Made by a program: the position numbers and the translations under genes. From Macrostomum lignano (lineage: Eukaryota): a DNA stretch of 29,766 bases. The stretch covers positions 249,835 through 279,600 of the forward strand of contig NIVC01000055.1 in the NCBI GenBank assembly GCA_002269645.1, in the 5' to 3' direction. Each line of letters opens with the position of its first letter. Positions within the stretch are counted from its first letter, which is position 1. This document shows positions 4,597-27,618 of this stretch, piece by piece. The notes beneath the pieces are model-generated. The model worked only from the letters and a program-made list of their open reading frames with translations. It ran no database searches and was not told the origin of the DNA.

Positions 4597-4600
4597 TGTT

Positions 4601-4618
4601 ATCCTGCTTGCGACGCCA
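4601..4618 (-). other. Primer-binding site of element B, probably tRNA-Ser type
   Basis: The + strand reads ATCCTGCTTGCGACGCCA, an 18-nt tRNA-like 3' end (ATCCTGCT-N5-CG-CCA as in eukaryotic tRNA-Ser), 1 nt from the 5' LTR. The tRNA identity is inferred. Confidence 0.75.
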
Positions 4619-4619
4619 T

Positions 4620-4852
4620 TGTTATGTTTTCTTTTACACCGAAGAAAGACGGAAGATAGTGTTTGAGCGTTTGCGAGCTTATGCCACTCGAGAGCATAGC
4701 CGTTTCAGAAACTTAATATATTTCTTTGGCTCGCGAGCCGTCTCAAGCATTTAATACTGTACCGAGTATCTAGAGTTTCAACCCTAGACACTTTAGAAGC
4801 AGAAAGCAAACGAGGCCGAAGTCTATAAGAAGTTAGAAGTCACGTCACAACA
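4620..4852 (-). repeat. 5' LTR of element B
   Basis: 233-bp copy of 626-858, followed on the - strand by the PBS. Confidence 0.97.
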
Positions 4853-6237: not shown

Positions 6238-6395
6238 TGTGACGGTGGACTTTTCTTTGTGCCACCCCATTTTTGATAAGTCTATAAATAGACCTGGTGC
6301 ACGCCAGAGGGCGATACTTGTTTTTTTTTGGTTTTGGCTCAGTTAGGAGCCTTGGACAATCAATATCATTCTTATTTATTTACAAGAATGCAACA
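6238..6395 (+). repeat. 5' LTR of element C (158 bp)
   Basis: Matches 10844-11005 except for a 6-bp gap after TATAAA and T9 versus T7. Confidence 0.95.
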
Positions 6396-7638: not shown

Positions 7639-10600
7639 AACCACTGAGGTTTGTGTGGCTGACTCACTACCCGTAAGCGCGCTGGTTGGACTGGATTTGA
7701 TTAGCCAGCTCAAGTTGGGGGGTGGAGACGCCCCGAGTACAGTGCTTGGAAGAGAGACGCGCGAGAGGGTCCACGGCCAACCCCTCTCAGCCAATGAGAG
7801 AGAATGGGTGGGTGCGCCGCACCGCCTAATGCCCCAGTCAGAGGGGGACGAGAGGCTTTTCGCGGAGGGCATCGTGGCTAGCGGCCTTAACCAGATCGAT
7901 CCGGAGCCGGCTGGCAAAACAAAATCAAGAATAACTAGAGCCCAAGCGCGTAAACAACGGCAAGAGTACAACAAAACGAGACAAGAAACTGCAATGCGCC
8001 CTATAACATTGGATTACGAGGCGGCCCTACAAGACGACAAGGAGTTGCAAGCAGCGGTACAAACCAACGACTTGGTGAAGGAAAGCCGCGGCAGACTGTT
8101 TCGGCATCAAGCAGCTGGAGAGGACCAACTGGTGCTTCCGAAGGCTCTGCGTGCTTCGGCGCTGTCCCAGGCCCATGAGAGTGCATTCGCTGGCCACTTG
8201 GGAACAAGGAAGACTTGTCAACGACTAGAACAGCGATTCTGGTGGCCAACGGTGACAAAGAACGTGAAGGACTTCGTAGCAACGTGCGACAAGTGTCAGA
8301 AGACGGCTCGAGTCCCAGGCAATCACAAGGTACCACTAGTCCAAGTGCCTGGAGTGGAGGAGGCCTTCACCAAAGTTATCATCGATATCAGTGGACCGTA
8401 TACGAGGACTGCGAGTGGTCACCAGTACATCCTGTCGATTATCGATGCGGCTACTCGATTCCCCGAAGGAGTCCCGCTGCGAAAGATCGACGCTGAGTCC
8501 GTAGCGAAGGCATTGGTGGACTGCTTCGTGAGGACCGGATTCCCGAGGGAGATCCAGAGCGATAAGGGTACTAACTTTTCATCAGCACTGCTGCAGGCCC
8601 TGTACCGGTGTACCGGGGTCGAGGGCATCCAGTCGACGCCGTACCATCCGCAAAGCCAGGCGTTGGTGGAGAGGTTCCACGGCACTCTCAAGAATATGTT
8701 GAGGAGACTACCAGCTCGCGAGAAAAAGAAGTGGGACCAGTACCTACCGTATCTGCTGTTCGCCATTCGGGAGGTGCCCAACGAAACAACTGGCTTCTCC
8801 TCATTCGAACTTTTGTATGGACGCACTGTGCGGGGACCGCTAGATCTACTGCGGCAGACCTGGGATGAGCAGCTCTCCGAAGAGAAGAAGGACATCATCT
8901 CGTTCGTGCTGGCCCAGAGAGACCGACTGCGGGCTGGCCAGGAAGCGGCACGGAACAGCGAAGAGCTAGCACGGAAGCGTCAGAAACTCTGGTACGACCG
9001 GCAGTCGCGGGAACGAGAGTTGCAGCCCGGAGATCAGGTGCTGCTGCTGCTGCCATCGTCATCCAAGAAGCTTCACGCTGAATGGCGCGGTCCCTATGAA
9101 GTACTGGAGAGGTGCAGCGATGTGAACTACCGGATCCGGATGGGCCCTGCGACAAACACGTTTCATGTCAACCTGCTCAAGAAGTACAATTCACGAGAGG
9201 CGGTTTTGATGCAGCTTCCAGCGGCAGCTACGAGTGCTCCTGAGTTGTCCGATCATCTGACACCTGCCGAGAGGGATCGTCTCCTGGAGCTGGTGCAGGA
9301 CTTCGCGGGCGTCTTCAGCGAGACCCCGGGGAGGACTGACCTAGTGGAGCGCCGTATCCGGACGACATCTGACCGCGTAGTGCGCATCCGGCCGCGACGG
9401 GAGCCGCAGGCGCATCGGCAGGTGCTCCAAGAGGAGATTCAACGCATGCTGGACCTCGGGGTGATCGAACCATCTGACAGTGACTACTGCTCCCCAGTCT
9501 GTCTGGTGGCCAAGAAGGACGGCTCAGTCCGGTTCACTGTCAACTTCAAGGCGCTGAATGAGCTGGTGGCCTTCGACTCCTATCCAATGAAGAACATCGA
9601 GGACCTACTGGAGCGGGTCGCCAAGGCCAAGTTCATATCTAAGCTAGACTGCTGCAAGGGCTACTGGCAAATTCCACTGTACGAGGATTCAAAGCGATTG
9701 ACGGCTTTCGCGGCCTGCGGCAAGCTGTATCAATTTACTGTGATGCCCATGGGCTTAAACTGCAGCAGCGCGACGTACCAGAGGCTCATGGACAAGCTGT
9801 TCCAAGGGCTGGACAACGCGGACTCCTACATCGATGACATCGCCGTGTTTAGCGCGACATTCGAGCAGCACGTCGAGGACCTGAGGGAAGTATTTGGTCG
9901 CCTTAAGGCTGCCGGTCTAACGGTGCAACCCCAAAAGTGCTACCTGGGCGGCAACTCTGCTGACTACCTGGGTTTCAAGCTCGGCGGAGGCGAGATCGGT
10001 ACAAGCGAGGACCGAGTGCGGACAATCACGGCGCTGGCTCAGCCCCGGACCAAGGCTCAGCTGCGATCTGTGCTCGGAGTGCTCAACCACTACCGTCGGT
10101 TCGTGCCCGATTACTCAGAAAAGGTGGCGGCCCTGACGGACCTCACGAAGAAGTCGGCACCCGATGACCTGACGGCGGCCTGGGGAGAGCAGCAGACGCG
10201 AGCCTTTGAGGCTGTGAAATCTTTGCTGGCGAGAGAGCCGGTGCTGCGCGCGCCGGACTACAGTCGGCAGTTCACCTTGGAGACTGACAGCTCGGAGACT
10301 GGGATCGGCGCGGTGCTAACGCAAGAGTTCGAGGACGGCATCCATCCCGTGCTATTCGTATCTCGGCGGCTGACTTCGGCGGAGCGGAGCTACGCGACGA
10401 TCGAGAAGGAGTGCCTCGCCGTGCGCTGGGCGGTCGAGAAGCTGCGGCACTACCTGCTAGGCCGCCGGTTCGTCATCAAGTCCGACCATAAGCCGCTGCA
10501 GTACCTGCAGATGGACCACGCCAACCCACGACTCCAGCGGTGGGCCTTCTCGTATCTGTCCGGCTATGACTACGAGATCCAGTACCAGCCAGGCGAAAGC

Positions 10601-10678
10601 AACACGGTGGCCGATGGTCTCAGCAGGATCTGGGCTAGTGACCGACCAAGTGATTTAGTGACCGACCAAGTGATTTAG
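7625..10678 (+). CDS. pol: Element C Pol: end of protease, integrase, reverse transcriptase, RNase H
   Basis: The frame is open from 7625 (…RTTEVCVADSLPVSALVGLD, protease C-end). Then HESAFAGHLG...CDKC, IDISGP...SDKG...VERF (DDE), WRGPY, RT KLDCCKGYWQI...YIDD, and RH TDSSETGIGAVL...EKEC...SDHKP...ADGLSR. Confidence 0.93.
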   Translation, partial: RATFRTTEVCVADSLPVSALVGLDLISQLKLGGGDAPSTVLGRETRERVHGQPLSANEREWVGAPHRLMPQSEGDERLFAEGIVASGLNQIDPEPAGKTKSRITRAQARKQRQEYNKTRQETAMRPITLDYEAALQDDKELQAAVQTNDLVKESRGRLFRHQAAGEDQLVLPKALRASALSQAHESAFAGHLGTRKTCQRLEQRFWWPTVTKNVKDFVATCDKCQKTARVPGNHKVPLVQVPGVEEAFTKVIIDISGPYTRTASGHQYILSIIDAATRFPEGVPLRKIDAESVAKALVDCFVRTGFPREIQSDKGTNFSSALLQALYRCTGVEGIQSTPYHPQSQALVERFHGTLKNMLRRLPAREKKKWDQYLPYLLFAIREVPNETTGFSSFELLYGRTVRGPLDLLRQTWDEQLSEEKKDIISFVLAQRDRLRAGQEAARNSEELARKRQKLWYDRQSRERELQPGDQVLLLLPSSSKKLHAEWRGPYEVLERCSDVNYRIRMGPATNTFHVNLLKKYNSREAVLMQLPAAATSAPELSDHLTPAERDRLLELVQDFAGVFSETPGRTDLVERRIRTTSDRVVRIRPRREPQAHRQVLQEEIQRMLDLGVIEPSDSDYCSPVCLVAKKDGSVRFTVNFKALNELVAFDSYPMKNIEDLLERVAKAKFISKLDCCKGYWQIPLYEDSKRLTAFAACGKLYQFTVMPMGLNCSSATYQRLMDKLFQGLDNADSYIDDIAVFSATFEQHVEDLREVFGRLKAAGLTVQPQKCYLGGNSADYLGFKLGGGEIGTSEDRVRTITALAQPRTKAQLRSVLGVLNHYRRFVPDYSEKVAALTDLTKKSAPDDLTAAWGEQQTRAFEAVKSLLAREPVLRAPDYSRQFTLETDSSETGIGAVLTQEFEDGIHPVLFVSRRLTSAERSYATIEKECLAVRWAVEKLRHYLLGRRFVIKSDHKPLQYLQMDHANPRLQRWAFSYLSGYDYEIQYQPGESNTVADGLSRIWASDRPSDLVTDQVI

Positions 10679-10715
10679 TGACTGACCAAGTGATTTAGAG
10701 ACTGACTGAGCGATT
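10636..10715 (+). repeat. Tandem repeat, 4 x 20 bp (TAGTGACCGACCAAGTGATT), spanning the pol stop codon
   Basis: Units start at 10636, 10656, 10676 and 10696 and degenerate toward the 3' end. Confidence 0.92.
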
Positions 10716-10834
10716 TAACTTTTATTAAAGTCGTTAGTGGCCAAGTTTGCATTGTTTTTTTGTAAGACATATCCGAACTTTGCGTGACCCTGCGATTGAT
10801 TTTTGGCTTGCGATTTTTCCGGCTTCGATCTTTT

Positions 10835-10843
10835 GGTGGAGGG
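10835..10843 (+). other. Short polypurine tract of element C
   Basis: GGTGGAGGG immediately before the 3' LTR. Confidence 0.65.
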
Positions 10844-11005
10844 TGTGACGGTGGACTTTTCTTTGTGCCACCCCATTTTTGATAAGTCTATAAATACTCG
10901 TAGACCTGGTGCACGCCAGAGGGCGATACTTGTTTTTTTGGTTTTGGCTCAGTTAGGAGCCTTGGACAATCAATATCATTCTTATTTATTTACAAGAATG
11001 CAACA
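10844..11005 (+). repeat. 3' LTR of element C (162 bp)
   Basis: Copy of 6238-6395, followed by the TSD CACGG. Confidence 0.95.
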
Positions 11006-11725
11006 CACGGCATTCAAACATCGAGAGAGAGGCGCTGGCGATCGTCTGGGCTATGGAGCGTGCGAAACAGTTCCTATTAGGGTCGCGCTTCACACTCAGA
11101 ACGGATCATCCTGCTCATTCTAGTTGACGCTATGTCCGGCTGGCCCGAGGCCGTACGAGTGCAAAACAGGGACGCGGCGACAGTCAAGCGGGTGTTGCAG
11201 GCGGTCTTTGCTAGGAACGGCGTGCCTCATGTGCTGGTCAGCGACAACGCCGCCGAGTTCCACGACGCCAATCTGGTCGCCTGGCTGGAAAGAATCGGCT
11301 GCCGCGCCATCAAGACTCCCCCGCGACACCCTCAATCTAACGGCCTGGCCGAGTGGATGGTCCAGTCTATCAACAGAGCATCTGCGGCGTGGGAACAGTC
11401 CGAAAGCTACGAGTCGTTCTTGTTCACGGTACTCATAAACTACAGGTGTGTGCCGCATGCTGGGCGCCAGCAGAGCCCGTCGCAGCTCATGGGTCGACAA
11501 CTACGCAACCCGATAACCATGCGCACACCAATTGGAGCGAGCCTGTGGTACACGCCTGGAGATCAGCAGCGTCAGGAGCGAGCTGAGTTCATCGTGCAGA
11601 AAGGGACCAACACTGCCCTAATCGCTCGTCAAGGCGGTCGCATCGCCCTGGCGCATGCGGATCAGCTGAGTCGCGTTGTAGAAGACCAGGTCCAGCCAAA
11701 CCGATTCGGCCAGAGCCTACCTATC

Positions 11726-11821
11726 GAACTCGGTCAGGATCCGCCCTGCGGCCTCGGTCAGGACCCACCTGGCGAACTCGGTCAGGACCCGCCTGGCGAA
11801 CTCAGTCGGGACCCGCCCACC
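11726..11821 (+). repeat. Coding tandem repeat, 4 x 24 bp ((E/G)LGQDPP(C/G)), in the element A integrase tail
   Basis: ELGQDPPC GLGQDPPG ELGQDPPG ELSRDPPT. Confidence 0.9.
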
Positions 11822-11902
11822 GAATCCGAACAAGGCCCAAGTCAAACAGCAGCGCGTCGCTACCCAGCTCGGTCAACTCGAGGCGTGCCCCTTATCCGTT
11901 TC

Positions 11903-11914
11903 GAAGGGGGGAGA
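11903..11914 (+). other. Polypurine tract of element A
   Basis: GAAGGGGGGAGA immediately before TG at 11915. Confidence 0.8.
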
Positions 11915-12175
11915 TGAGGCAGCGCTGGATTCTGCCGCTGTACTTATGACTAAGTGACTAGCTGATTGACTATTGAAATATTGACTGTACATCCAGTGTA
12001 CCCACCACCCCGGTTTCGTGCCCCGTGTGCCCCACCACCCCAATGCGTTAATAATTATATATTGAGCATCGTTTGTGTTAGCATCGTTTATGAATAATAT
12101 ATCGAAACTGAGACATCGTTTATTTTACCAAATCATCGTGCTACTCAGTTGAACTCTTAGTTAAACGACGCGACA
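11915..12175 (+). repeat. Putative 3' LTR of element A
   Basis: Starts with TG right after the PPT. The end is placed at ...ACGCGACA (12175) because of the CA terminus and the shift to AT-rich flank. The partner LTR is outside the window, so the end cannot be verified. Confidence 0.55.
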
Positions 12176-12321
12176 TATTCTTTATAGTCCGTATTTATTT
12201 CATTATCTATATTTATGAGCGATAATGAAGTGAAAAATGTATAATTTATCCTTAATAACAATAATTTTAGTTTGTTGCTTGCAATTGGTTTGCTGGCAAT
12301 TTTGTATGGTATAATACTACT

Positions 12322-12463
12322 GGTCAAAAGTCACTGGCGGTCAAAAGTCACTGGCAGGCAAAATTCACTGACGGTCGAAAGTCACTGACGGTCAAAAGTC
12401 ACTGGCAGGCAAAATTCACTGACGGTCGAAAGTCACTGACGGTCAAAAGTCACTGGCGGTCAA
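12322..12463. repeat. 17-bp minisatellite (GGTCAAAAGTCACTGGC), 8 units plus a partial one
   Basis: Three unit variants recur as a 51-bp trimer (12356-12406 = 12407-12457). Confidence 0.92.
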
Positions 12464-13918
12464 CAGCCAAAGTCCTAGACCCCGCATCATTGCACGGATA
12501 CATGCATATTGTCGTTGTCGACTGCCTCAGGTTTGGACGCATGCCTGTCTTGAACTGCCGTGACTGACTGACTACTTCCTGTGAGCTGCAAATCTGTCGC
12601 GGAAAACCAATGCTCTGGCGCCGAAAATGTGAAGCCGCTTTGACAGTCAGTCATTAAAACAAGTTCCTATTGGGTTTTGACTACAAGACTCACACTACCT
12701 CGGCGATATTTTTGCCGTCTTACATTTAATCCCTAGCTCTGTGACATCCGCAGGTGCTAAATACAGTATTTATTATCTGTGGTAAGATCTGCCTGTCCAA
12801 CTTCTTAACTTTCTACTTTCAGTAGTTGATCTTTCCAACACATTAATATTTAGTCGAATTTTCTATCCTACGAGCTAAGATTTTAGCGACGACAAGTAGC
12901 TTTCATTAAATGTTTAAGTATACCCAGATAATCTAGGCGAAACATGGGATATTTAAACTGAAGAAATTGTCCACTCTAAGAGTGAAACGCTATCAAGGAA
13001 TCCGGGACCAGATCAGCGGTAATAAGCTCGTCCGACTCTCGCATCACAGTACCCAAGGTCAGCGGAATTAGTCTGACTGCTTTCGTCCTCACTGACTTGC
13101 TGACTTCCACCCAAAGGCCCCTGCAAACTGACCTACCAAGCCATCAGAAGGCCAATGTTAATGATTTAAAGTCGATTTTTAAGTTGAATAAAGTTTCCCA
13201 AGGCATAAAGTGAACCCTCAGTTAGATGCATATTCTGATTTTTTAAGGACTGCTTTAGAATTTTAGTCATAGCTATATTTCAATATTGAACAAATGGTCG
13301 AAGAGAGAATTTCTATTGTCGATGCGTACCAACAAGAAACTATCAGTTTCAGGACAGCACAGCTTAGTGCTATATGAGTAAACTATATAAAATATTGTTT
13401 TAATCAATAGATGGGGAGTCAAGTAAAATTCCGGAGTTGAAAAAGCGACATAATAGTCCATAGAATATGATCAGATGATACTTATATATTAATCCTTTAT
13501 CCTTTCACGCGTCAATATCGTGTAATGCCAGGTGCAAAATCTAAAAATAGGTGAGAGTACATAAAGGTATTTCGCCAGAAAATTTGATAACAAAGAAGAG
13601 AATGATAAATCAGTTCTAATGGGACAAATTATCAACAGCCAATCAATACAGAAAATATCTTGATGAAGAAAATAATTAGAATATCGGATAGCATTTAGTG
13701 TCCGCTAAAGCACTTAGTTTGTCCTTGTTTGGATTAGCTAATTTGCATTGGTAATTAGCAATCTGTGACCAATCAGAGCTTCAGGCAAGTCCGCGATCAA
13801 ATCCAGCCGGTGGTATTTGTGACTGAAGCGGAACAGAGTTATTCATCATATCTGTGTCTGACTAACTGGTGCCTCCATAGAGATTTGATTAGCAAAAAAG
13901 CTTAGATAGAGAGCTCAC

Positions 13919-14266
13919 CGTCCAGACTTTGAGTAGAATAAACCAGGCGGAATCCTTTCGAAGTAACGCTTGAGTCAGTTCTGAATCGAAGCAGCACAGG
14001 ACCTTGCAGGCTTAGTGAAACTCCAGTGGCATTGCTGTTAACCAGACTCGTTGTCAGCTTGCTATCGTCTACCTCATCAGAGATGCTGAATCTGTCGTAT
14101 ATGAAGATTTTGTCACAGCAGTTCTCAATGTCCACTTCTTCCATCCGGATGTTGACGGGGCCCGTCGCGTCGATCAGCCATTGATAGTCTTTGTTATTAG
14201 CGTATCTTGCGTACATCGACGATCCATAGTTGTTTGGACACTTGATCGTGCCCAAGTCCTCCGAAA
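13919..14266 (-). CDS. CUB exon 23 (type G3)
   Basis: ttttag|TT...G|gtgagc, 348 nt; DLGTIKCPNNYG...DIENCCDKIFIYD...FRTDSSVTSKGFRLVY. Confidence 0.9.
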
Positions 14267-17200
14267 CTAAAAGAAATGCGGTCAACTTGCACTCGATTTG
14301 CATTCTAAAGCCATTGTGTACATCGTAAAGGTTGCGACTACTAATAACAAAACTGATCAAATTAAATTCTACACTATTAATTACCTTATACACCTACGAC
14401 TACCCTTTTACTCTTAAAGTAGCTTACACTTCTTCTCAGAGACGAGGACTACTAGACGAAGTGTTCCTAGTGATCTTTGCTCAGAGAAAAGTACTCGTGT
14501 TACTCTCGCACTCAATTTGCAAGTTTGGGTAAAACGATCACACACAAACGCACACACATACCTACCGAAAAACCATTTTTAGTATAAGACAAATCTTAGA
14601 GATTTAGTATAGGTGGATTTAGTATATTTAGATTAGAGCTGCAGTTGAATAAAATCAAGCGAAGTAAATATTTAACCCTCTCAGTGGTGAATGCAATCGT
14701 AAAAAATTCAACACCTCAAGCTCACCTACAATCGGTCCGCGTCTATAAGAGAACGCAATGCCCCGACCATCAAAGCGTCTGCCAGTTTTAACTCTAATCA
14801 GCAGGGGTCCCGTCAGGACAAAGTCCGTTGACGTGGCATTCGCGTCAGTTAGAATGAACAGCAAGTTTTGCTCATCGGCATCGGCGCTTGCTTGATCAGA
14901 AATTGCAAAGACTTCAATGAAGCTTCCATCTGCTCCGAGATTTGACCAGTTGAATGCCAGCTTGTAAACATATTTGCCCGGAATCAGCCACTTATACTCC
15001 ATCCACTTCTCCATTGTCCTGTTAGCATCGGTTGGGTACTGAATCATTGCAAAACTTTGGGACTGATTGGCGAAAACTGAAACTGTTTGAAAATAGCGGG
15101 GGATCAGAGATGATTGGAAAATGTCAGAGGAAGTGTAAAAAGTGCAATTACCAGTCCTAGGCTCGATGGAATAGGACAAGTCGAAGCCCTGACCGACTAG
15201 CCGTTTATCCGTGCTAAACCGGATCAGCACGGGACCAATCAACTTATACGTTGCCGATGTCGCATTCGCCTGTGTCAGTGTGAACCTCAGCTTGCTGTCT
15301 TCTGGCTCATCGGTTTCTCCATCAGTCATCTCGTACAACTGGATGATGTCATTTCCGTAGCCAATGTCAGCAGATGTGACAGTGATGAGGACGAAATTCC
15401 TTCTGTTGATGGTCCATCTGTACTCCATCTCGTTAGCGTAAGTCGAGCCAGTCTCTTCGGGACAACTAAAGCTACCAGAGTCATTGGTCATGGCGACGTG
15501 CACTGAAAATGTGAACAAATTTTAAGCATCACATTGCCCACATTGTGCAAAGTTGGAACTTAGTGTCAATCAGCAGATTAATATTATCGCAATACAATGT
15601 GCAACTAAAGAATTCTCACCACTTCTGATCTGATAATCGAAAACAACTTGACCGCTCGCCGAAGCAGAGTTGTTGGACGAATATACAACTGCAAGGATGC
15701 CTTTGTGCGTCACGTGATTCGCAAATGGGATCCGTCTCGCACTTTTCTGCATCGCTGGGCTGCTTAGCAGATCCATGTCGCCAGCGAATATCTCTACAGA
15801 AGACGAAGTCGTGATACGGTTAAAGATGAGGTGCGTCAGGAAATCATGAGAACCAGTTGGTGCCACAATCCACTTTGTGCTCGAAGGTCTCGGGAGGACG
15901 GTGGATCCTTCCGCTGGATTGCAGAGTCTCATGCCTCTGCTGCCCCTGATTACCTCGGTTGCTGGTGAAGCCTCTGAAAGATTCAGTTGTGTTTCAGTGC
16001 TAATGATTTGGTGGTCTTTGGAATCAAATGACTGAGACGGAGGTTCTGGCCAGATTTTTCTTGGCGATGCAGTCACAATGATGGTAAACTCATAATCCTT
16101 GAATGAGGGCGTACTTGGATGTAAGAAATCGCTAAGGTGTTAACTTAAAAAGGTGATCTCTGAGTAGGAAGTTTTCTGAATCTTCAACAAAACAAGGAAT
16201 TACCTTCAGCCGAACCATCAGCTGTGTAAGTGAGCTTGAAGTCCCTGCGGCTGCCGTCGCTGTTGGCTGTGAACCGAAGCAGCACAGGACCGGACAGTCG
16301 GAACTCTGACTGGCTGGCACTCGAATCGGACACCACAAATTTCAGATTGTCCTCCGTCTCAGACCTCGTGTTTTGGTACAGGTACACTTTGTCCCCAGCA
16401 GGAAGATTGATGGAGCTGAACCTGATGCGAACCGTGCCGCTTCTGTCGATGATCCATCGATGGTCCAGGTTGCCATCAGTTGCTTCACTTTGCGAGGAGT
16501 AACTGATTTCTCCTTCGGCATCACTCAGAGAAACTGAAATTCGTGGCAGGCGTTTAGGAGGTCAAATCTAAAGGTCAAAGCGGCCTGCTTTGAACTATAA
16601 GATGCAATAAGAGGAAAGGGTGGAACTCTTTAGATGACAAAGACACAGCAGACTTCGGACTCAACTCACCATTCCCAACGGAGTAGGTGAACCTCAAGCC
16701 GAATCTGTCTCCGCTGGCTCCAGTTCTCAGCACCACGGTGACGAATCCGCTCGCTCTCAGGGTCTTCCTCTCGCCAAGTAGGCCAGTCTGACTGAATATG
16801 GGAGACTCGCTGAGCCTGGGCTCAACTCCCGTGTACACACTGACTGTATCGCCATGCGGCTGGCCTCCCTCGGCATCAAAGAGCTGCAGCTCAACCGTCT
16901 GTTGAGGGCTCACAGCGATGGACCAGGCTCTCGATGAGCCCACTGGTCCTCTGGACGGATAAATTGCTTTGCTTCCCTCAATGTTTTTGATGAGTTCAGT
17001 CGGCGTTGGTAGTTCTGGAATAATGCGAGGGTAAATATGAGTCCAGCTCTTATCCGGCCATTAGCAAACAGTGAAAGGTAAGAGTGCTGGCGATACTAAG
17101 AATGTGTTCGCTGGATAAGTTTGTTACACTGAACAGGGCAAATAATCATCGTTTCCTATCGGAGACACTATTATTATCCGCTGTCGTGTATTCTGTGGTG

Positions 17201-20200
17201 ACAGCCCGCCCAGTTTTGTCTATCCGCCCTACATGCTATTGCTGAACAGAAACACGGTCCAAATTATCGTTGTCATTTCTGCGGTTGAAATATCCCATAA
17301 ACTGGATGAATTAGTTTAGAAATAATTTTTCATTGATTTGACCAATAATGGAGCCACTGAGTCACCAACGGCAGTGCGAACCGCATTAAAAACTGAAGTA
17401 CAGTAAAAAGACGCTAAATCGATTTTCCCAGTAATGAGCTGAAGGTAAGGAACACACAGTACGAGTATAATTGTCGCATCGCTAGTGCTTTTGCTCTCAA
17501 GAAGTCGGATTTTTCTAGCGCAAAGTTTTTTCGACCGAATTATTCTATAGCGAAAGCCCCTTCAGAGCCGTGCCCTCTAGCGATTCGGAAAATATTCGGT
17601 CTTTACAAGCGTGCACCTCATTTCTAAAAAAATCGAGTGTGCCGTTCACTTCAGTTGTCCATGGCAAACCGACCTTAAGCATATCAAGCGTCTGTACACA
17701 TTGAATGCTCTGTAATGAAGGCGTGTTTATACTTATTAAACGTGTTTGAGCAGTTGAACAATCATGTATCTGGGACTCAAAAGTTTATTTACAATATTTC
17801 CTATAAATGATGAATAAATGGAAAATGATCATATTTTACCTTCGCTCCCGCTCTGATACGACAGCTTGAAGATGTTGCCACTGACCCGCTTTGTGGTGAC
17901 TTGAACCAGCACGGGACCTCTGAGCCTGAACTCTACAGAGGTCGCATTCGTCATTGACCTGTGCTCAGAGACGAAGGCCAGCCTGTCCTCGCTGGGGTCA
18001 GCAGTCATCTCGTACAGTCTGACAATATCTGCGTGAGACAGCTTCAGCGAGACCCAGCCTTGACGATCAATGAGCCACCTGTAGTCAGTCTCGAGGTCAT
18101 ACTTCATCTCTTCTTCCGCAGGAAGCTGCTCGCCTTCAGAGCAGACAACATCGGCTTTTTCGTCTGTCAGGTTTCTCGATTTTACTAAAACGGTTTCATT
18201 CAGAGCGTACTGAGGAATGTTACGAATATTAAAGATGTAAATAAGTAGTTTGACGGAAACAGTAACATCACTTTCTGTTTGTTTTGTTTTGATTTGTTTT
18301 GTCACTCTCTGTAAATTTTTACTGACTAAATATTTAATTAACAACAACTTACTTCTGCTGTCAAGAGCCGAGTAAGATAAGTTGAAGCCCGCCCGATGAT
18401 ACTAATGTCAGTAACGAATTGGATCAGCACCGGACCAACGACATGAGCTGTTTTGTTATCACTTGTCACGGTAAACCCTTTCTTAGAATCCTGAGCATCT
18501 TCAAAAAGCTGAGTCTTCTCATAGAAACTAATTTTATCGATTCCCGTTTCAACGTCATACGAGTCAACCTTCATCTCGAGCAGGCTCAGATCGCCGATCC
18601 ACCAGGCGTACGTTTTGTTGTTTAAATAGTAACCGCTGCCGAAGTTCTCTGGGCATTGAAGCTTTCCTGAGTCGACTGAAAAGGCATCGAAAATTGAATA
18701 GACGTCAGATGCTTTGCATTGGCTCAAATGTAGACCCACCTTGCGTGCTAAAATTTAACTTAAATAACAATAATTAACATTACCAATTACTATAAACAGT
18801 AATGAGAGTATCTGGAACTCAGGAATTCGAAACTCACCCACGTATCGATCGAGATAATAATCGATTATAAAGCCTCTTGACGCGTTCTGATGATCAGTTT
18901 TAAATCGGATCAACGCAGGTCCAACCAGAACATACTTTATTGAGCTCCAGCTGTCTCCAGTCAGTGTGTATTTTCTGTTCTCAGGCTGCGGTTCCGCCGA
19001 AGAGTCAGTCTTTTCATAGAATTCAAGCACATCGTTTGCGTCCTGAATGCCCATGCTTCTAACTGTCAAAAAGACAACTCTGCTCGATGGAATGTACCAA
19101 CGATAGTCCATCTGATGCTCGTAGGCTTCATACTCTTCATTCGGACACCTGATGCTGCCCGAATCGTTTAGCAGATTACGGGAAACTAAAAATGTAAAAG
19201 AAGTGGCTTGGTGGAGAAACACCCACGTGCATAGAAAACCAAGCGTCAGAATACGCAAAGCTGCAAAATTTTACACCGTGAACTCAAAATTTTAAACTAA
19301 GGAAATGCATAAAACACCAAAATGGCTCACGAGTTCGTTCCTCAACAGTATAAGACAAACTGAAGCCTTTGCCAACAAGAGACTCATCCGTGCTAAACCG
19401 GATCAGCACGGGACCAATCAACTTATACGTTGCCGATGTCGCATTCGCCTGCGTCAGTGTGAACCTCAGCTTGCTGTCTTCTGGCTCATCGGTTTCTCCA
19501 TCAGTCATCTCGTACAACTGGATGATGTCATTTCCGTAGCCAATGTCAGCAGATGTGACAGTGATGAGGACGAAATTCCTTCTGTTGATGGTCCATCTGT
19601 ACTCCATCTCGTTAGCGTAAGTCAGCTGGATTCCTCTGGACAGCGAAGGCTTCCAGAGTCCTCGCTAAGGTAGCGATGCACTGAAAGGAAGTAAGGTTTA
19701 TGGTCTCACCATGGTCTCACGGTGCACTGAAAAGGGCAAGAGCTCACCGTTTCTGATTTGATAATCGAATTGAAAGACCAAATCAGTACAGCGGTCAATA
19801 ATACTAGACTCTTCTATCTGTTCCCAGTAAACGGAAACAGGTCCACCTTTACTGATGTGCTGTGTCAGTCCACTGAACTGAGCCTCAAAGCTATCATTGG
19901 AGAGTCTCTGAGTAAGCCAATTTCCAGCATAAACGAACCAACCGCAGGTATACGAATCGTAAAATTCAAAAAATTCTTCTTCTTTGAAAAGAATATGAAC
20001 GGTGAATTCATGACTCGGCTTTGGCGCAATGACCCAAACAATTTTTGCTCTTTCAGTCCTGTCGGTGGTATCAAATTTAGGGAAGCTCCATCTGGTACCT
20101 CGACTGCTCTTCACTACTTCAACCGCATTTTCCACTGCAAGAAGGTTTGATTGGGATAAAAATGGTTCACGATTACGTACATTTAGTTTTAGTTTTAATA

Positions 20201-23200
20201 TGCACGCGACTTCTCAAAGGCTTACACTTCAAATCGGATCTGACTGATATGCCAGCCGGAAGCTTCTCGGGCTGCCGTCTCCCGCTGCCGTGATGCGAAT
20301 TAAAACAGATCCTCTCAGCCAGAACTCCGACTCGCTGGCACTCGCATCTGCTAGCACAAATCTTCTCTTGAGCTCATCCTTGGACGTGGTGTTTTCGTAC
20401 AGATGAAGCTTGTCTCCGTCCTGGAGATTGAGGGAACGAACATTGATGCGAACAGAACCGCTGCTTTGAATGATCCAGCTGTAATCCATGTCCAAGTCGA
20501 AAGCTGAACTATCCGACGAGTTTTGAGGGAACCTGATTTCTCCCGATCGTCCTGACAGTAAAACTTTAAGTGCAAAGAAGAATAGATCATGCAATGCAGA
20601 CTAAAGTAGTATGACTATATTTTTGCATTAGTTATTGTTAAAAATGAAAACAAAGTATGTATAATTACCGTTTTTCACTGAATACTGGAGGCCGAACCCT
20701 CGCTTTGCTTCATTGGCGTCGGTTCTCAGCACCACGGTGACGAATCCGCTCGCTCTCAGGGTCTTCCTCTCGCCAAGTAGGCCAGTCTGACTGAATATGG
20801 GAGACTCGCTGAGCCTGGGCTCAACTCCCGTGTACACACTGACTGTATCGCCATGCGGCTGGCCTCCCTCGGCATCAAAGAGCTGCAGCTCCACAGTCTG
20901 TTGAGGGCTCACAGCGATGGACCAGGCTCTCGCAGAACTCGGTCCGCAGCTGCTTCGACCATCAGGCATGAGGCAGCCCTGCAGTCCGTCCAAGTTTCGC
21001 AAAAGCGCAGTTGTCATCGATAAATCTGCAGGGAAGTTATTTAGAAAAGTCACTGTTCCTATCTAGAGATACAAATTGATTGATTGTCGCTTTCAGATTG
21101 CCTCACTTTGTCGGTTGACACTGAACGTCGCCCCGAACGGCACTATCGTCGGCCTCATCCTTCGCGATTGAAGCCGAACAACTGCTGGGCCTCTTAGTTT
21201 GAACTCGGTAGACATCAAATCGCTGAGCGGTGCATCAGTCAGGGAGAACACGCGACTCCTTGGAGTTGGGATCTTCGTCCTCTCGTGCAGCTCTAGCTTG
21301 TCGCAACCGCTTAGCAATTGAGCCTGCACGAATCGAATGCTGACCGCCGCTGTTGTGTCGACGACCCACCTTCGGTCAATCTCCATGTCGTAGCCATCAG
21401 TATCGCAGACATCCAGCCCAATGGCATTCCTCAAGTTGCTTGACTGCACTCCAATTTCACCTTGAGTCTGTGTCAGAACACTGGATATTACTAAAATATT
21501 ATAGAAACCGTGCATTATTTCAGACAATAGAAAATACCAAAGACGCGTAAGATGGGATCAAAAACATCAAAGTGACATCAGCATACCGAATTGGTCTCCT
21601 ATTTCATAGGAAAAGTTTAGAGCTCTTTGCATTGGTCGACCAGCTGTAACTAACTTGATCATACCAGGTCCGATCAGTCTGTATGTAGATGAAGTAGCAT
21701 TCCCCTTCGTCAGTGTAATGTTTGCAGCTGACGAGTCCTTTCTCCATAACTGGATTTTGTCGCAGCAGTCTGAGATTTCCACCCCACTGAATTTGACTGC
21801 CACAGCTGCCTTTCGGTCGATTTTCCAAATGTAGTTTACCTGGGCTTTGGTGAATGATGGCGGGTTCACCCACCGAACTTCACCCGAGTCTCCTGACAGA
21901 CCTGAAAGTTCGAATTCAACTTTTAACTTGTCTTATGAAGCAGCTTTCATAAATATAAATATAATGAACTACTGTTTGCTTGAATACATAAATTTTTTAT
22001 TTTTGAAACGAGCCAGGTAAGAAAATGCAGAAATCTATCATGAACTCCTAAATTCTAATTAAAATCAAATTACGACGTATAATCAAACTTTGATAAAAAA
22101 ATACTATACTAATTATTTCTTACTTGAGGTTTCTTCTAGATAGTATGTCATGCGAAACCCGTCACGATTGCCACTGCCGTCAGTTTTGAACCTGATGAGC
22201 ACTGGTCCCTTCAAGGTGTATGTTTCACCGTATCCGCTCCCTGTAAGCCTGTACTTTCGTTTATTTTCGTCAGGCTTCTCATGCACCGGTGAGTTTTCGT
22301 ACAAGCCGATCCAATCATAATTACTCTCAGTATCATAGCGAATGAACGTAAGCACCACCGTTTTCTGCTCATAGATGCTCCACTCGTAGTCAACGTTGTT
22401 ATCGTACTTAGAGTATCCATAGTTCTCCGGATATGAAAGGTTTCCACTGTCCACTGAAAGGATTTAAGGAAAATATAATAACGAGTAAAAAGCGGTTGTT
22501 TAGTATGTGCAGACAAAATATTCCCAGAAAGACTGAAAGCTTTTAGGCAATTATGTGCTAACAAACTTCATGGAAACATTGCGAATTGATGCTTACAGAT
22601 TTTGCTGCCAGCCTGATAGTAGAGCTGGAAGCCGGGAGCAGTAACTTGAGAGTTCGTTCTGAACCGGATGAGCACTGGTCCGACCAGCGTAATATTCGAC
22701 GCTTCTGCAGCCTCCTGAGTCACATTGAGCTTCCATCTCCGCCGATCTGGCTCTCCACTCTCATCGACCTTCTCATAGAACTCGATGGTGTCTTGAATGT
22801 CAATAAAGTCGAACCGAATGACAATGATGCTTTTTCGATTGATTGTCCATCGATAGTCCATGAACTTCTCATAGTTCACCAGTGCGGTCTCGGGGCAGAA
22901 AATATTGCCGGAGTCATAATTTAATATTCGGTGTACTGCAAACGTTAATGAGAACATGTCTACACAGTAAGTTTTATTCGAGCTATAATCATCTCTCAGT
23001 TAGTAGCTTAAAGAGAATTCTATCTAAAGAACTGGAATTCTTGATATCCACTAGAATCCACTTGTTTACTACGAGCCAAAATTCCAGTTCACAACCATGC
23101 AACTGGCTGTGCACTGTTTATACTTTCTTCGAAAAAACATGCATGTGAAACCGTAAGTTTTATCTTCAAACAACATGGTCGCATTTCGATAGGATAAGAA

Positions 23201-26200
23201 TCGGCAATTTGATAAGACCCTAAAGTCACAACTCAATGAAATGAACATACTGAGATAAGAATCGGCAATTCGATAAGACCCTAAAGTCACAACTCAATGA
23301 AATGAACATACTGAGATAAGAATCGGCAATTCGATAAGACCCTAAAGTCACAACTCAATGAAATGAACATGCTGAGATAAGAATCGACAATTCAATAAGA
23401 CCCTAAAGTCACAACTCAATGAAATGAACATACTGAGATAAGAATCGGCAATTTGATGAGACCCTAAAGTCACAACTCAATGAAATGAACATACTGAGAT
23501 AAGAATCGGCAATTCGATAAGACCCTAAAGTCACAACTCAATGAAATGAACATACTGAGATAAGAATCGGCAATTCGATAAGACCCTAAAGTCACAACTC
23601 AATGAAATGAACATACTGAGATAAGAATCGGCAATTCGATAAGACCCTAAAGTCACAACTCAATGAAATGAACATGCTGAGATAAGAATCGACAATTCAA
23701 TAAGACCCTAAAGTCACAACTCAATGAAATGAACATACTGAGATAAGAATCGGCAATTTGATGAGACCCTAAAGTCACAACTCAATGAAATGAACATACT
23801 GAGATAAGAATCGGCAATTTGATGAGACCCTAAAGTCACAACTCAATGAAATGAACATGCTGAGATAAGAATCGGCAATTTGATGAGACCCTAAAGTCAC
23901 AACTCAATGAAATGAACATGCTGAGATAAGAATCGGCAATTTGATGAGACCCAAAAGATATAACTCAATGAATTGATATTCTGACTTACAAGTCCGCTCT
24001 TTAGTAGTGTAGGACAGATTGAATCCCTGACCAACAAAATCTTTGCCCGGGACGAAACGGACCATGACTGGACCCGGAATTCGGTAGGCCCCCCGTGCTG
24101 TAGCATTCGACTGAGTCAGAACGAACTTCAGCTTGGCCTGCTGTGGCTCGTCGGTCAAATAGGCTTCCTCGTACAGCTCGATGACGCCACTCCCAATGTC
24201 CACTGTTGAGACCTCGATAACAACTAAGTTAAGCCGGTTGATTGTCCATCTGTACTCCATTTCGCTCTCTAAGGTCTCACCAGACACTTGAGGACAGCGA
24301 ATTGAACCCGAGTCTTTTACGAGAGGCTCTTGAGCTGAAAAGAAGAAAGAAAAAATGCTCTTAGCTGCTTGCAAGTGAAATAAAATTTGACTAAAATCTG
24401 AAAGCGCTTTGAGTATTTTAATAAGCATCATAGCATTTTGCAATAAAATGACTACTCATAGAAGACAAAGACTGTATCATTAGATAAAAATGCCAACATT
24501 CATTACCGTTCATTAACTGAAACTTGAACTCTCGCTGAGATCTAATGAAGCTCAAAGCCCGTGGTCGATAAACAACAGTGAGAGGACCGTTGTACCTGAC
24601 GATGCTCGCATACGGGATCCGCTGGAGTGGCTCAGAATTCGACAAGCTGGTGACGGCTCCCTCATAGAGACTTATTGCGATTCCTGACTCCACTGGCAGC
24701 TCTGGCAGGTACAGCAGAACTGAGCGCCCGGGCTTGGCTGCAATGACCCATGCAGTAGGCGACCCGTTCTCGGGGATAAGAGCTCTCGAGCCTCGATAGC
24801 TGTCAATCAGCTCAACAGCCATGTCGGTATCTGCAGTGTCACACAAGCAGTCGCGTCAATCGCATATCTATGCTTGTCACCTAAGAGATAACAATTCAAT
24901 TTTTAGGAAATTATCACTCACTGCCCGACTGGTCAGCTGCATACGACAGTCGAAAGTCTCTCGACTGACCGTCTCCGCTGGCAACTAATCGAATCATGAC
25001 GGGACCGGACAGACGGAACTCCGACTCTCTGGAGCTCGCATTGGTCACCAGGAATCTCAGAGCCGCTTCGTCCTCAGACGTTGTGTTCTCGTAGATGTAC
25101 AGCTTGCCATTGGGACGGAGGCTTATGGAGGCGAATCGGATGCTGAGTCTGATGTCTCTGCTAATGAACCAGCGGTAGTCAATGTCGCTGTTGAACTCCG
25201 CTGAGCCCTTCGGGAACCCGATCTGTCCACTCGGTTCCGCTTGAGGAGCTTAATGAAGGTGAGAAAATATTACCGATTTAGTTTTAGTTACCAACAGAGC
25301 TGCTGAAATTTGCGTAGTCAGTGCCTTGACTGTGTATATTCTGCTTCACTTTTACCTGACTCATGCATTTGGCTGTTATGCCCTACATCACATTATATGC
25401 TAAGCTTTTCGTTGCACTTCGATTATCATAGTTCAAAACGATTCTTACTGCTGTATACAGTGTAGGAGAGACCGAGCCCACGTCGTGATCGTCTGGCTTC
25501 TGTCGTCAGCACCACAGTGACGAATCCGTTCGCTCTCACGGTCTTCCTCTCACCAAGTAGTCCAGTCTGACTGAATATCGGGGACTCGCTCAGCACAGGA
25601 CGAACCCCATTATATACGCCTATCGTATCCGTATGAAGCTGACTTCCCTCGGCATCAAATAGCTCGAGCTCAACGATTTGCTGGGGATTCACGGCGATAG
25701 ACCATGCTCTTGTTGTGACATTGCTCACAGCGATGTCGGCACCTTTACTTTGGTAACAGATTCTCTCTCCTTTTTCATTTTTGATTATTTCAGTAGGCAT
25801 TTCCAGATCTGAAGCGACAATGGAATCATCATTGTAATAGTCTAAGAACGGAGTCACCCTAAACTTTAGTGATTCGTTTTAAGTCTAGAATTACCTCCGT
25901 CGCTGCTTCTGTAGGACAGCCTAAAAACTCGTCCCCTTGTCTGTGTCTTCTTAACCAGCACCAGCACCGGGCCGAACAGTCGGAAACGCGACGTCCCTTC
26001 TCTCTCTTTCGGTCCGTTGGTAAAGACGGGCTCCTTGTCGGGGGTTGTCGTCATCTGGTAGATCCGAGCGAGGTCAGAGAAGGACAGCTTGAGGTCGATT
26101 CTCCCGGGTCGGTCAATGAGCCATCTGTATTCAATGCTAACATTGCTGTCTCGATCCGAGACTTCCAGCTCTGAGCAGATTGCGTCGTCGCTGGGCTCGG

Positions 26201-27559
26201 TGAAAGTTCTGAATCGAACTAAAATTGCGAAAATAGGGTAGTTTTTCAACTATCAGCTCATTGCTTTGATATTACTTATACTATTTACCACTTATACTAA
26301 TACGTATACTTATCCTACTTATCCAAGCTTTTTTTCAGTATAGGAAGCCTTCATTAAATACATGCAGACAGTAGCCAACGTTAACAACGTTACTCACCCA
26401 AAGATTCCTCAAGCGTGTAGGTTAGGTTGAATCCCCTCTTTGCGACGCTACTATCTGTCTTAAATCGAATTAGCACAGGAGCAATGAGCACAAGCGCTTG
26501 GGATGTAGCGTTATTCGGATTGATTCGGAATTTCGGATTCCTGCGATACGATACTTCGAGGTCGTCCGTACCCTCGAAAATCTCCAAGCGGTCATATGGG
26601 GTCTCCAGTTCCGCAAAGTGGAATCGGATGGCTACAGCCTTCGGCCCGCGAATGGTCCAGTTGTAGACTTTGAGTTCTCATAGACGGCGCCGGGCTGCCC
26701 AAAGTTTTCCGGACATTGAATTGTGCCAGTGTCGGCCGGGACTGAAACTGTGGATCAGGGACCACATCAGCACTTGGATGAACATAGCTGAGCTGACAGA
26801 ACTGCTTTAATTGCAAAACAGTCTAGAACTTTGATGGGTCTGTAAACTTTGATTGACTCATCTTGACTGTCAGTCAACACTTCAACTGCTAAAAATTTAC
26901 TGCTGGTCCTAACCTATTATTGAAGTAAATCATCGGCAGAGAAACGTCAGGAACCAAATTCTGACTGTTCTTGATGATGGCAACACAATACATATATTCC
27001 CTTGATAGCTTCTGATTATAGATTTCTTAACACTGATTTAAACTTTTTAACATTCATTTCGATGCGGGCTCGTGTTTGAATGTAACCAATATTACGTGAG
27101 TTCAAATCATCATTGTTGTCTGGACTTTAAGGCCCGGACTGATTATACTGAATATTACCGATTTTTCGCGGCAGACACAATAACTTGCTGTCTTGAACGC
27201 AGACAAATCTGTAGTACATCCACTTGTACTACAGATAGCTGATGTTGAATAAAAGTGTCAAATACAGTCATCAATGATCTTAAAAATGACTGTGCAATGT
27301 TCATCCGAACTCTTGACTAAAAATCGTGGAACAAATGAAGAGCTAAAAAAATCGAGGGCAATAGAACATCCACAATCACATTGCGGTCAGTCAGTCAGTC
27401 GCAAATCTGACTTGATCAGAGGCTGCAGTTCTCAGTCCATAGCATTAGGATGTTGAAATATTGGCGTCAACAATCAGACTCACCCGCTACAGCAGAGCCG
27501 GTTTCAAATGCCAAGAGGCTGCCTAGAAAGGCGGTGAGTAGCAGTTGCAGCAAATCCAT
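13919..27559 (-). CDS. Multi-exon gene for a large secreted multi-CUB-domain glycoprotein (signal exon plus 23 CUB-like exons, ~2,680 aa; terminal exon unresolved)
   Basis: Every exon is bounded by AG and GT in phase 1. Each repeats the CUB scaffold SG.I..P...Y....Y.W.I...D.L.(I/L)YE...GPVLIRF.TD....GF.L.Y. Nineteen CUB exons have lengths divisible by 3 and four are 1 nt short. No EGF repeats are seen, so it is not called cubilin. Confidence 0.88.
14726..15082 (-). CDS. CUB exon 22 (type F3)
   Basis: aaacag|TT...G|gtgagc, 357 nt (alternative in-frame AG at 15076); MEYKWLI...LTGPLLIRVKT. Confidence 0.85.
15152..15502 (-). CDS. CUB exon 21 (type E3)
   Basis: tttcag|TG...G|gtaatt, 351 nt; DSGSFSCPEE...MEYRWTINRR...GPVLIRFSTD. 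Confidence 0.9.
15620..15973 (-). CDS. CUB-like exon 20 (type D3, divergent)
   Basis: ctttcag|AG...G|gtgaga, 354 nt; EVIRGSRG...KWIVAP...FDYQIRSG, paralogous to exons 13 and 5. Confidence 0.72.
16204..16533 (-). CDS. CUB exon 19 (type C3)
   Basis: tttcag|TT...G|gtaatt, 330 nt; EGEISY...DHRWII...SEFRLSGPVLLRF. Confidence 0.88.
16670..17014 (-). CDS. CUB exon 18 (type B3)
   Basis: ttccag|AA...G|gtgagt, 345 nt; RAWSIAV...LSESPIFSQTGLLGERKTLRASGFVTVVL. Confidence 0.88.
17840..18184 (-). CDS. CUB exon 17 (type A3)
   Basis: ttttag|TA...G|gtaaaa, 345 nt; DYRWLIDRQG...FRLRGPVLVQV. Confidence 0.85.
18353..18675 (-). CDS. CUB exon 16 (type G2), 1-nt deletion near 18388-18390
   Basis: tttcag|TC...A|gtaagt, 323 nt. 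Adding one G gives GRGFNLSYSALDSR and restores phase 1. Confidence 0.82.
18838..19185 (-). CDS. CUB exon 15 (type F2)
   Basis: ttttag|TT...G|gtgagt, 348 nt; DSGSIRCP...MDYRWYI...FKTDHQNASRGF. Confidence 0.9.
19331..19680 (-). CDS. CUB exon 14 (type E2), 1-nt deletion at 19623/19624
   Basis: tttcag|TG...C|gtgagc, 350 nt. DSGSLRCPEESS then shifts frame into TYANEMEYRWTI. Confidence 0.82.
19748..20134 (-). CDS. CUB-like exon 13 (type D2, divergent)
   Basis: ttgcag|TG...G|gtgagc, 387 nt; EVVKSSRG...VWVIAPKP...FDYQIRNG. Confidence 0.8.
20226..20563 (-). CDS. CUB exon 12 (type C2), 1 nt short, or carrying an in-frame TGA at 20229-20231
   Basis: ttaaag|TT start; 338 nt to the gtaagc donor; SGEIRFP...DYSWII...SEFWLRGSVLIRI. 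Confidence 0.75.
20669..21025 (-). CDS. CUB exon 11 (type B2)
   Basis: ctgcag|AT...G|gtaatt, 357 nt; core almost identical to exon 18. Confidence 0.88.
21107..21490 (-). CDS. CUB exon 10 (type A2)
   Basis: ttttag|TA...A|gtgagg, 384 nt; EIDRRWVV...GCDKLELHE...FKLRGPAVVRL. Confidence 0.8.
21587..21901 (-). CDS. CUB exon 9 (type X2)
   Basis: tttcag|GT...G|gtatgc, 315 nt; DSGEV...NYIWKI...EISDCCDKIQLW. Confidence 0.88.
22124..22453 (-). CDS. CUB exon 8 (type G1)
   Basis: tttcag|TG...A|gtaaga, 330 nt; DSGNLSYPENYG...YDNNVDYEWSI...DTESNYDWIGLY...FKTDGSGNRDGF. Confidence 0.92.
22597..22935 (-). CDS. CUB exon 7 (type F1)
   Basis: ttgcag|TA...T|gtaagc, 339 nt; DSGNIFCP...MDYRWTI...GPVLIRFRT. Confidence 0.9.
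23193..23983. repeat. Intronic 61-bp minisatellite, 12 full units plus one degenerate unit
   Basis: Unit GATAAGAATCGGCAATT(T/C)GAT(A/G)AGACCCTAAAGTCACAACTCAATGAAATGAACAT(A/G)CTGA, starting exactly every 61 nt from 23193 to 23925. No spacers. Confidence 0.97.
23990..24334 (-). CDS. CUB exon 6 (type E1)
   Basis: ttttcag|CT...T|gtaagt, 345 nt; DSGSIRCP...MEYRWTINR...FVGQGFNLSY. Confidence 0.9.
24507..24830 (-). CDS. CUB-like exon 5 (type D1, divergent)
   Basis: ctgcag|AT...G|gtaatg, 324 nt; ELIDSYRGSR...AWVIAAKP...YNGPLTVVY. Confidence 0.72.
24922..25248 (-). CDS. CUB exon 4 (type C1), absent from the ORF track
   Basis: cattaag|CT...A|gtgagt, 327 nt, open throughout; SGQIGFP...DIDYRWFI...KLYIYENTTS...SEFRLSGPVMIRL...DFRLSY. 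Confidence 0.88.
25449..25841 (-). CDS. CUB exon 3 (type B1)
   Basis: ttcttag|AC...A|gtaaga, 393 nt; RAWSIAV...LSESPIFSQTGLLGERKT. Confidence 0.82.
25895..26218 (-). CDS. CUB exon 2 (type A1)
   Basis: ttttag|TT...G|gtaatt, 324 nt; EYRWLIDRPG...FRLFGPVLVLV. Confidence 0.85.
26398..26747 (-). CDS. CUB exon 1 (type X1), 1-nt deletion near 26669-26671
   Basis: ccacag|TT...G|gtgagt, 350 nt. DTGTIQCPENFG...YENSK then shifts frame into VYNWTI...ETPYDRLEIFEG...FKTDSSVAKRGF. Confidence 0.82.
27484..27559 (-). CDS. First coding exon of the CUB gene: signal peptide
   Basis: ATG in gcaaATGG context; MDLLQLLLTAFLGSLLAFETGSAVA; 76 nt (3n+1) ending at a GTGAGT donor in phase 1, matching the CUB exons. 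Too short for the ORF track. Confidence 0.85.
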
Positions 27560-27618
27560 TTGCTGGTTGCTGCACAAGAATTTCTTAGGGCTCCGGTGCT
27601 GCAGCTTGACCAGCATAA

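Follow-up and report, generated by a model that had tools for sequence, protein, structure and literature searches.

Concerted evolution of internal repeats is known from several modular proteins, among them the kringle IV-2 units of LPA, the super-repeats of nebulin, the CUB/TSP repeats of sea-urchin EBR1 and the repeats of abalone VERL. Exon-restricted micro-conversion is known from old gene pairs such as RHD/RHCE and CYP21A2/CYP21A1P, and from exon patches in the class I and class II genes of the major histocompatibility complex (MHC). In this study, we analyzed a window consisting of the terminal 29,766 bp of contig NIVC01000055.1 in the Macrostomum lignano assembly Mlig_3_7 (GCA_002269645.1); the window is identical to locus L003 of our comparisons, and its position x lies at 249,834 + x in the record. 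It carries a gene, the Mlig033186g3 locus, for a putative secreted protein built of CUB-like domains, in which two pairs of exons share nearly identical cores inside otherwise strongly diverged sequence. We consider it likely (probability of roughly 0.85) that these cores go back to old non-allelic gene conversion with occasional later re-homogenization, and that a 1-nt deletion beside one of the cores, in exon 14, is a consensus error.

As in LPA, nebulin, EBR1 and VERL, tandem phase-symmetric domain exons of a single gene appear to exchange sequence at this locus. However, whole units, often together with their introns, are homogenized across many copies in those proteins, whereas only two exon cores of about 23 exons are involved here, and between only one pair of modules. 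The tracts also resemble those of RHD/RHCE, CYP21A2/CYP21A1P and the MHC genes, where sharp-edged patchworks of tens to hundreds of bp lie within exons. Those pairs are more than 90% identical overall, while the sequence outside the patch is saturated in the present gene. We found nothing relevant in the literature on gene conversion in tandem CUB-domain exons or on Mlig033186.

The gene lies on the minus strand and possesses at least 23 domain exons (13919-26754), one for each CUB-like domain and each about 300-400 nt long. Splice sites and reading phase showed that these exons are symmetric (phase 1-1), and the introns are very short (67-188 nt among the measured ones). The exons form a module of eight types, A-B-C-D-E-F-G-H, which is repeated about three times. 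Because the third module has no D-type exon, exons 14 and 21 are seven exons apart and not eight; in its place there is an intron of about 825 bp (17015-17839), which contains no recognizable CUB remnant. The window was compared with six further loci of the same assembly (L001, L002, L004, L005, L006 and L007) and with two near-identical long proteins, P0001 and P0151, which were recovered by an exhaustive protein search whose other matches are remote CUB proteins. The gene and the A-type exons are as follows.

13919..27616, minus strand: gene (Mlig033186g3 locus), matching the full-length proteins P0001 and P0151
15152..15502, minus strand: exon 21 (A type), 351 nt, open, phase 1-1, with acceptor ttttcag/TGCACG and donor GGACTG/gtaatt
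15207..15444, minus strand: A-tract copy in exon 21, encoding TYANEMEYRW...LIRFSTD, the core of a CUB-like domain
19331..19680, minus strand: exon 14 (A type), phase 1-1, 350 nt here and so frameshifted, 351 nt and open in the other copies
19386..19623, minus strand: A-tract copy in exon 14, with the same edges in L001, L002, L004, L005 and L006
23990..24334, minus strand: exon 6 (third A-type paralog), 345 nt, phase 1-1, unconverted, 65% identical to the A tract

Alignment of 15107-15544 with 19286-19723 gave an uninterrupted A tract (15207-15444 against 19386-19623) in which 237 of 238 positions are identical, exactly as the original prediction had read it. The only mismatch (15273 T, 19452 C) is synonymous and lies in a minus-strand Thr codon (ACA/ACG). 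The sharp fall in similarity that had been described around the tract was likewise borne out. Beyond the tract, exons 21 and 14 agree at 37 of 57 positions on the 5' side and at 31 of 55 on the 3' side (56-65%), the introns flanking them showed no similarity in a self-BLAST of the gene at word size 9, and the H-type and B-type exon pairs next to them share 41% and 45% identity, respectively. When no more than one mismatch was allowed, the longest run covered 241 columns; the permuted maximum was 95, and none of 10,000 column permutations reached the observed length. By our own arithmetic, the chance of 237 matches in 238 positions, given independent sites at 60-65% identity, is below 1e-40.

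A second tract, the F tract, which the original prediction had not mentioned, connects the same two modules and is also confined to the exon core.

16723..16933, minus strand: F-tract copy in exon 18 (exon at 16670-17014)
20722..20932, minus strand: F-tract copy in exon 11 (exon at 20669-21025), with the same edges in all other copies
25449..25808, minus strand: exon 3 (third F-type paralog), unconverted, about 78% identical to the F tract

The two copies of the F tract are identical at 209 of 211 positions and include a perfect core of 170 nt (16723-16892). The mismatches, at 16893 and 16896, are both synonymous, as are therefore all three differences within the A and F tracts. Outside the tract the ends of exons 18 and 11 are strongly diverged, and the permutation test likewise showed identity beyond chance. 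There is no further exact repeat of at least 18 nt within the gene, and the remaining exon-type pairs are 41-63% identical.

Constraint on the protein does not account for this pattern, since the third A-type exon encodes the same type of domain and shows the low identity given above. Selection might also act on the nucleotide sequence itself, for example on an embedded RNA or DNA element, and keep the cores identical independently of any copying. The position of both tracts in exon cores and their stability across all gene copies would fit such selection. However, the third paralogous exons, of the same domain types, reach only 65% and 78% identity, and the tract varies among the gene copies at both synonymous and non-synonymous sites. 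No embedded element was found, although no search for one was made. We regard this explanation as having next to no chance of being correct.

The other gene copies place the tracts in time. Identity between L001 and the window is 98-99%. A second group, made up of L002, L004 and L005, differs from the window by 2.8-3.4% in exons and by 5.0-5.5% in introns. L006 is 99.8% identical to window positions 29766-15791 over 14 kb and represents a second contig of the same locus, and L007 matches window positions 18435-3868, with a switch of haplotype. Both tracts have the same two edges in every assembled copy (six or seven), which answers the call of the original prediction for a comparison of edges. 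Each of the contigs that bear the tracts (L001, L002, L004, L005, L006/L007) carries private variants, and identical cores were also found in P0001, P0002 and P0158, proteins obtained via UniProt that derive from another assembly, ML2. Therefore, the tracts are not artefacts of contig NIVC01000055.1.

This bears on the refutation that had been proposed for the conversion, namely that mis-polishing or collapse in the assembly had overwritten one of the two copies. Short reads or RNA-seq reads would be the agents of such mis-polishing. The history of the assembly gives some grounds for such a suspicion. Mlig_3_7 was assembled with Canu from PacBio continuous long reads (CLR) and was polished by Pilon only, with Illumina and RNA-seq reads (PMC5730564). 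The DV1 line has three subgenomes; 93% of read pairs find more than one locus to map to, and chimeric scaffolds make up 36% of the assembly length (PMC10733133). Moreover, the confinement of the patch to the exon is what polishing with RNA-seq reads would be expected to produce. However, short reads cannot mis-map across a divergence of 35-40%, so that polishing may erase a few differences but not create a tract. In addition, at least five further contigs, all of them with private variants of their own, share the tract and its edges, and the tract is also present in the proteins predicted from the independent ML2 assembly. RNA-seq or short-read polishing was rejected as the creator of the tract on the basis of this divergence and of the presence of the tract in other contigs, and an assembly artefact in general is very improbable. 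The proposed refutation thus fails for the tract as a whole, while single bases inside it could still have been altered in this way.

The same edges are present in both groups of copies, and the founding conversions are therefore older than the split between the groups. The differences in the flanks sort by paralog in all copies, while the A tract has no fixed paralog-specific site at all; in the F tract, two sites near one end (exon nt 119 and 122) are paralog-specific in all gene copies. The original prediction had called the conversion recent. For the founding events this holds only relative to the ancient duplication of the modules, given that they precede a split across which exons now differ by about 3% and introns by about 5%. 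A small later transfer, marked by a C at 15297/19476 and discussed below, does look recent.

Non-allelic conversion within the gene, the central claim of the original prediction, is supported by an extreme patch of identity that extends to synonymous sites, by saturated flanks, by the presence of the patch in all copies and by a typical tract length. From the sequence pattern, breaks in one exon would have been repaired from the paralogous exon about 4 kb away, the two lying as direct repeats. One short non-reciprocal copy each would have been made in the A-type pair of exons 14 and 21 (about 240 nt) and in the F-type pair of exons 11 and 18 (170-211 nt) of the adjacent modules. As the comparison of copies shows, the founding events preceded both the duplication of the gene into two copy groups and the divergence of the three subgenome copies of this neopolyploid, and all copies have inherited the same two tract edges. 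Only the converted core (at least 98% identical) would then have been similar enough for further exchange, and the island would keep its hard edges between flanks of 56-65% identity. Finally, the Canu/PacBio consensus near the contig end would have dropped one T of a TT in exon 14, and likewise bases at three other exon homopolymers.

Non-allelic conversion tracts cover a few hundred bp, with a mean of about 250 bp (bioRxiv 10.1101/135152), and the tracts described here (238-242 nt for A, 170-211 nt for F) fall within this known range. As in the human duplicates of that study, a short patch of near identity that includes synonymous sites lies within diverged paralogs, the tracts are short (170-242 nt), the partners are about 4 kb apart in the same orientation, and the process is slowed or halted by sequence divergence. 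The M. lignano locus differs from the human duplicates in three respects. The partners are exons of one gene and not separate genes, the background is only 56-65% identical, far under the level at which conversion is normally seen, and the A tract shows no GC bias.

The original prediction had further placed the deletion in exon 14 exactly at the tract boundary and had read it as a possible repair scar. The gap does follow directly after 19623. Three more bases match past the gap, so that it falls on the edge of the A tract with a margin of 3-4 nt. It is one of four 1-nt exon deletions that are private to the window; none of them occurs in any other gene copy, and all four are filled in L006.

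19623..19624, minus strand: site of the absent base in exon 14, where the window reads AGC-T-G-ACT, private to NIVC01000055.1
18394..18395, minus strand: private 1-nt deletion in exon 16, GGGG read as GGG
about 20238, minus strand: private 1-nt deletion in exon 12, in a C run
about 26672, minus strand: private 1-nt deletion in exon 1, in an A run

At the gap site of exon 14, L001, L002, L004 and L005 read AGC TCG ACT, in frame and with the same tract edge. The sister contig L006 reads AGC TTG ACT, and its exon 14 is 351 nt long with an open frame (CPEESSLTYANE). The window and L006 thus differ in length at this point, T against TT. Among the indels between these two contigs, 13 of 14 are differences in homopolymer length and 11 of 14 are bases missing from the window. 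The deletion in exon 14 is most likely a homopolymer consensus error of this contig. The true reading is most probably TTG, which would be a C-to-T change (Ser to Leu) within the ancestral tract, four bases from its edge. The residual homopolymer indels of Pilon-polished PacBio CLR assemblies provide a close parallel, with 1-nt undercalls (TT as T) clustered at a contig end and with polishing that is ineffective where short reads multi-map. No difference from that pattern was seen, and the only oddity is the chance position beside the tract edge.

It is also conceivable that the deletion is real, either as a repair scar or as a frameshift in a decaying redundant copy, with exon 14 skipped or the whole copy a pseudogene. 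Its closeness to the tract edge, which we estimate to arise by chance within the exon in about 4% of cases, would agree with this. The genome contains several redundant copies of the gene, which makes the loss of one plausible, and the skipping of a phase 1-1 exon preserves the frame. However, the other copies have the same tract edge and no deletion, and the deletion therefore did not arise with the founding event. The TT of the sister contig of the same locus, the filling of all four exon deletions in L006 and the lack of any stop codon in the window also speak against a real loss. Nor was there relaxed constraint on the branch of the window, on which 12 synonymous and 13 non-synonymous substitutions were counted, compared with 11 and 16 on the intact sister branch. 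Pseudogenization of the window copy was not supported by these counts, and no sign of decay was seen. A real deletion is improbable, and the scar in particular does not survive the comparison with the four TCG copies, the in-frame TTG of L006 and the homopolymer nature of 13 of the 14 indels.

Several observations inside the A tract point to exchange after the founding event. The number of differences between exons 14 and 21 within one copy is 1 in the window, 2 in L001, 5 in L002, 1 in L004 and 1 in L005; in L006/L007 it is 3, plus the TTG site. Three sites (206, 230 and 261 in exon numbering) show all four gametes in each pairwise combination, and by our own count a tree that separates the paralogs first requires 8 or more changes at them, instead of 3. 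No homoplasy was seen across the gene copies in the flanks of the tract. Site 206 corresponds to 15297 and 19476, site 230 to 15273 and 19452, and site 261 to 15242 and 19421. A derived C at this site (GAC, Asp) replaces the GAG that both exons of the other copies carry, and it is limited to exon 14 of the window locus, where both the window and L006 have it, and to exon 21 of the window. The window is thus the only contig that carries the derived C in both exon copies. These patterns suggest that the A tract has occasionally been re-converted.

The F tract behaves differently between the groups. In L002, L004 and L005, exon 18 carries five shared derived substitutions within the F tract, four of them at codon positions 1-2, and exon 11 carries none that are shared, which suggests faster protein change in exon 18 of the second group after conversion. 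A re-conversion of the F tract in the group of the window was considered for the number of differences (0 in one group against 5-9 in the other). It was rejected because, judged by the third paralog, the five additional states of the second group are derived and not old differences lost from the group of the window; four of them are at codon positions 1-2.

A number of points weigh against the explanation as a whole. The exons were presumably only about 60-65% identical before the event, a level at which strong suppression of homologous repair is the norm. Conserved stretches of 17 nt are the only seeds to be seen, and the explanation gives no account of how the first event began. The GC bias that often accompanies conversion is not seen in the A tract (GC 0.49, flanks 0.44-0.56); the GC content of the F tract is 0.60 and that of its flanks 0.47-0.57. 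The signal of continuing exchange consists of three sites in an assembly with known chimerism, the haplotype of the window changes with respect to L007 a short way upstream of exon 21, and some of the site patterns could be mosaics of assembly or polishing. In the F tract, the outgroup test with the third paralog gave no evidence of later conversion. The call of TT against T in exon 14 comes from a second contig and not from reads. With respect to the founding step, there is a small chance that the islands are self-perpetuating, that they arose between exons already about 60% diverged and were kept in register through a gene duplication and a whole-genome multiplication, and that they have persisted because selection favors identity of the CUB cores of modules 2 and 3, for example as a repeated binding surface, and not just through the confinement of recombination to them.

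The same points lead to the question of whether there was a single old conversion and none since, the homoplasies and the shared derived base being due to recurrent mutation or to chimerism and Pilon mosaics. In favor of this, the signal is carried by only the three informative sites, the change of haplotype between the window and L007 (15697-15537) adjoins exon 21, and the F tract shows no later exchange, with its two fixed paralog-specific sites and with the five extra differences of the second group being derived. On the other hand, five extra steps would have to fall within 238 nt that have only about 10 variable sites, next to flanks without homoplasy. The CpG observed/expected ratio is about 0.9-1.0, and hypermutable CpGs are therefore not expected. 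Furthermore, the C at site 206 in exon 14 is present on two contigs. A single conversion followed by no exchange is unlikely, though it deserves serious consideration. Old conversion with occasional later re-homogenization is the reading that we prefer.

Two local irregularities were seen near these exons. Above about 15697 the window agrees with L007 and not with L001, while from 15537 to 13840 it is L007 and L001 that agree, at 28 informative sites in a row, and the window stands apart with 28 private variants. This switch near exon 21 reflects contig chimerism or else a genuine recombination of subgenome copies. Seven substitutions that separate the window from L006 cluster in 550 bp (19249-18705), and elsewhere the two differ almost only by homopolymer indels. 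The cluster may stem from the exchange of a small patch between subgenome copies or from a locally mixed consensus.

The product of the gene is, as predicted from the sequence, a secreted multi-CUB-domain protein, about 2,700 aa long, in which 23 or more CUB-like domains follow one another. The exon for its signal peptide precedes the domain exons.

near 27470-27560, minus strand: signal-peptide exon

The CUB-like exons share a domain ending, GPVLIRF..D...GF.L.Y, and a motif resembling an N-glycosylation site, NAT[ST], is conserved just ahead of the GPVLIRF strand in most domain exons (13919-26754). Against Pfam CUB (PF00431; cut-off 21.4 bits), the C-type exons scored 28.5-28.6 bits, and the tract-bearing exons remained under the cut-off with 14.5 bits (A type) and 16.7 bits (F type). 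The source name of the two long proteins is "CUB domain-containing protein" of Macrostomum lignano. Among 1.8 billion representative proteins there was no close homolog outside M. lignano, the next match having E = 6e-36 and 32% identity. A word-indexed protein search with exons 20-23 gave no match, while the exhaustive search did recover the close proteins. Exact look-ups of a retrotransposon Pol open reading frame (ORF) and of a 287-aa read-through ORF were unsuccessful.

The first 12 kb of the window (1-12000) consist of nested long terminal repeat (LTR) retrotransposons.

LTRs 634-858 and 4627-4852: LTR element 1, with an intact gag-pol ORF of 1241 aa on the minus strand
LTRs about 6236-6395 and 10842-11005: LTR element 2, with a Pol of 1007 aa in which integrase stands ahead of reverse transcriptase-RNaseH (Gmr1-like order)
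4862-5629 and 11132-11917: fragments of a third LTR element

Short tandem arrays at 12305-12490 and 10636-10715, with a 17-bp unit (GGTCAAAAGTCACTGGC-like) and a 20-bp unit (TAGTGACCGACCAAGTGATT), lie at the border of the gene and the retrotransposon nest. Within the gene, a 61-bp tandem repeat of about 17 copies (23071-24100), 93-100% identical in the middle of the array, fills the intron after exon 6. Judged by BLAST offsets, this array is apparently shorter in L001, L002, L004 and L005.

The exon cores described here are a clean new example of a well-known, ordinary process, which is well documented at this locus. With regard to annotation, the model Mlig033186g3 (PAA92384.1) is truncated because of the four private exon deletions, that is, it is cut by consensus errors to 1191 aa, whereas intact gene copies give 2689 aa. 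With regard to method, a frameshift beside a repeat edge in a Pilon-polished, polyploid long-read assembly calls for a comparison with sister contigs before any biological meaning is attached to it. The locus opens no new question and adds a small data point on the reach and self-confinement of non-allelic conversion. For the evolution of this gene in M. lignano, the results indicate that conversion islands with fixed edges have outlived both gene duplication and polyploidization within otherwise saturated exons.

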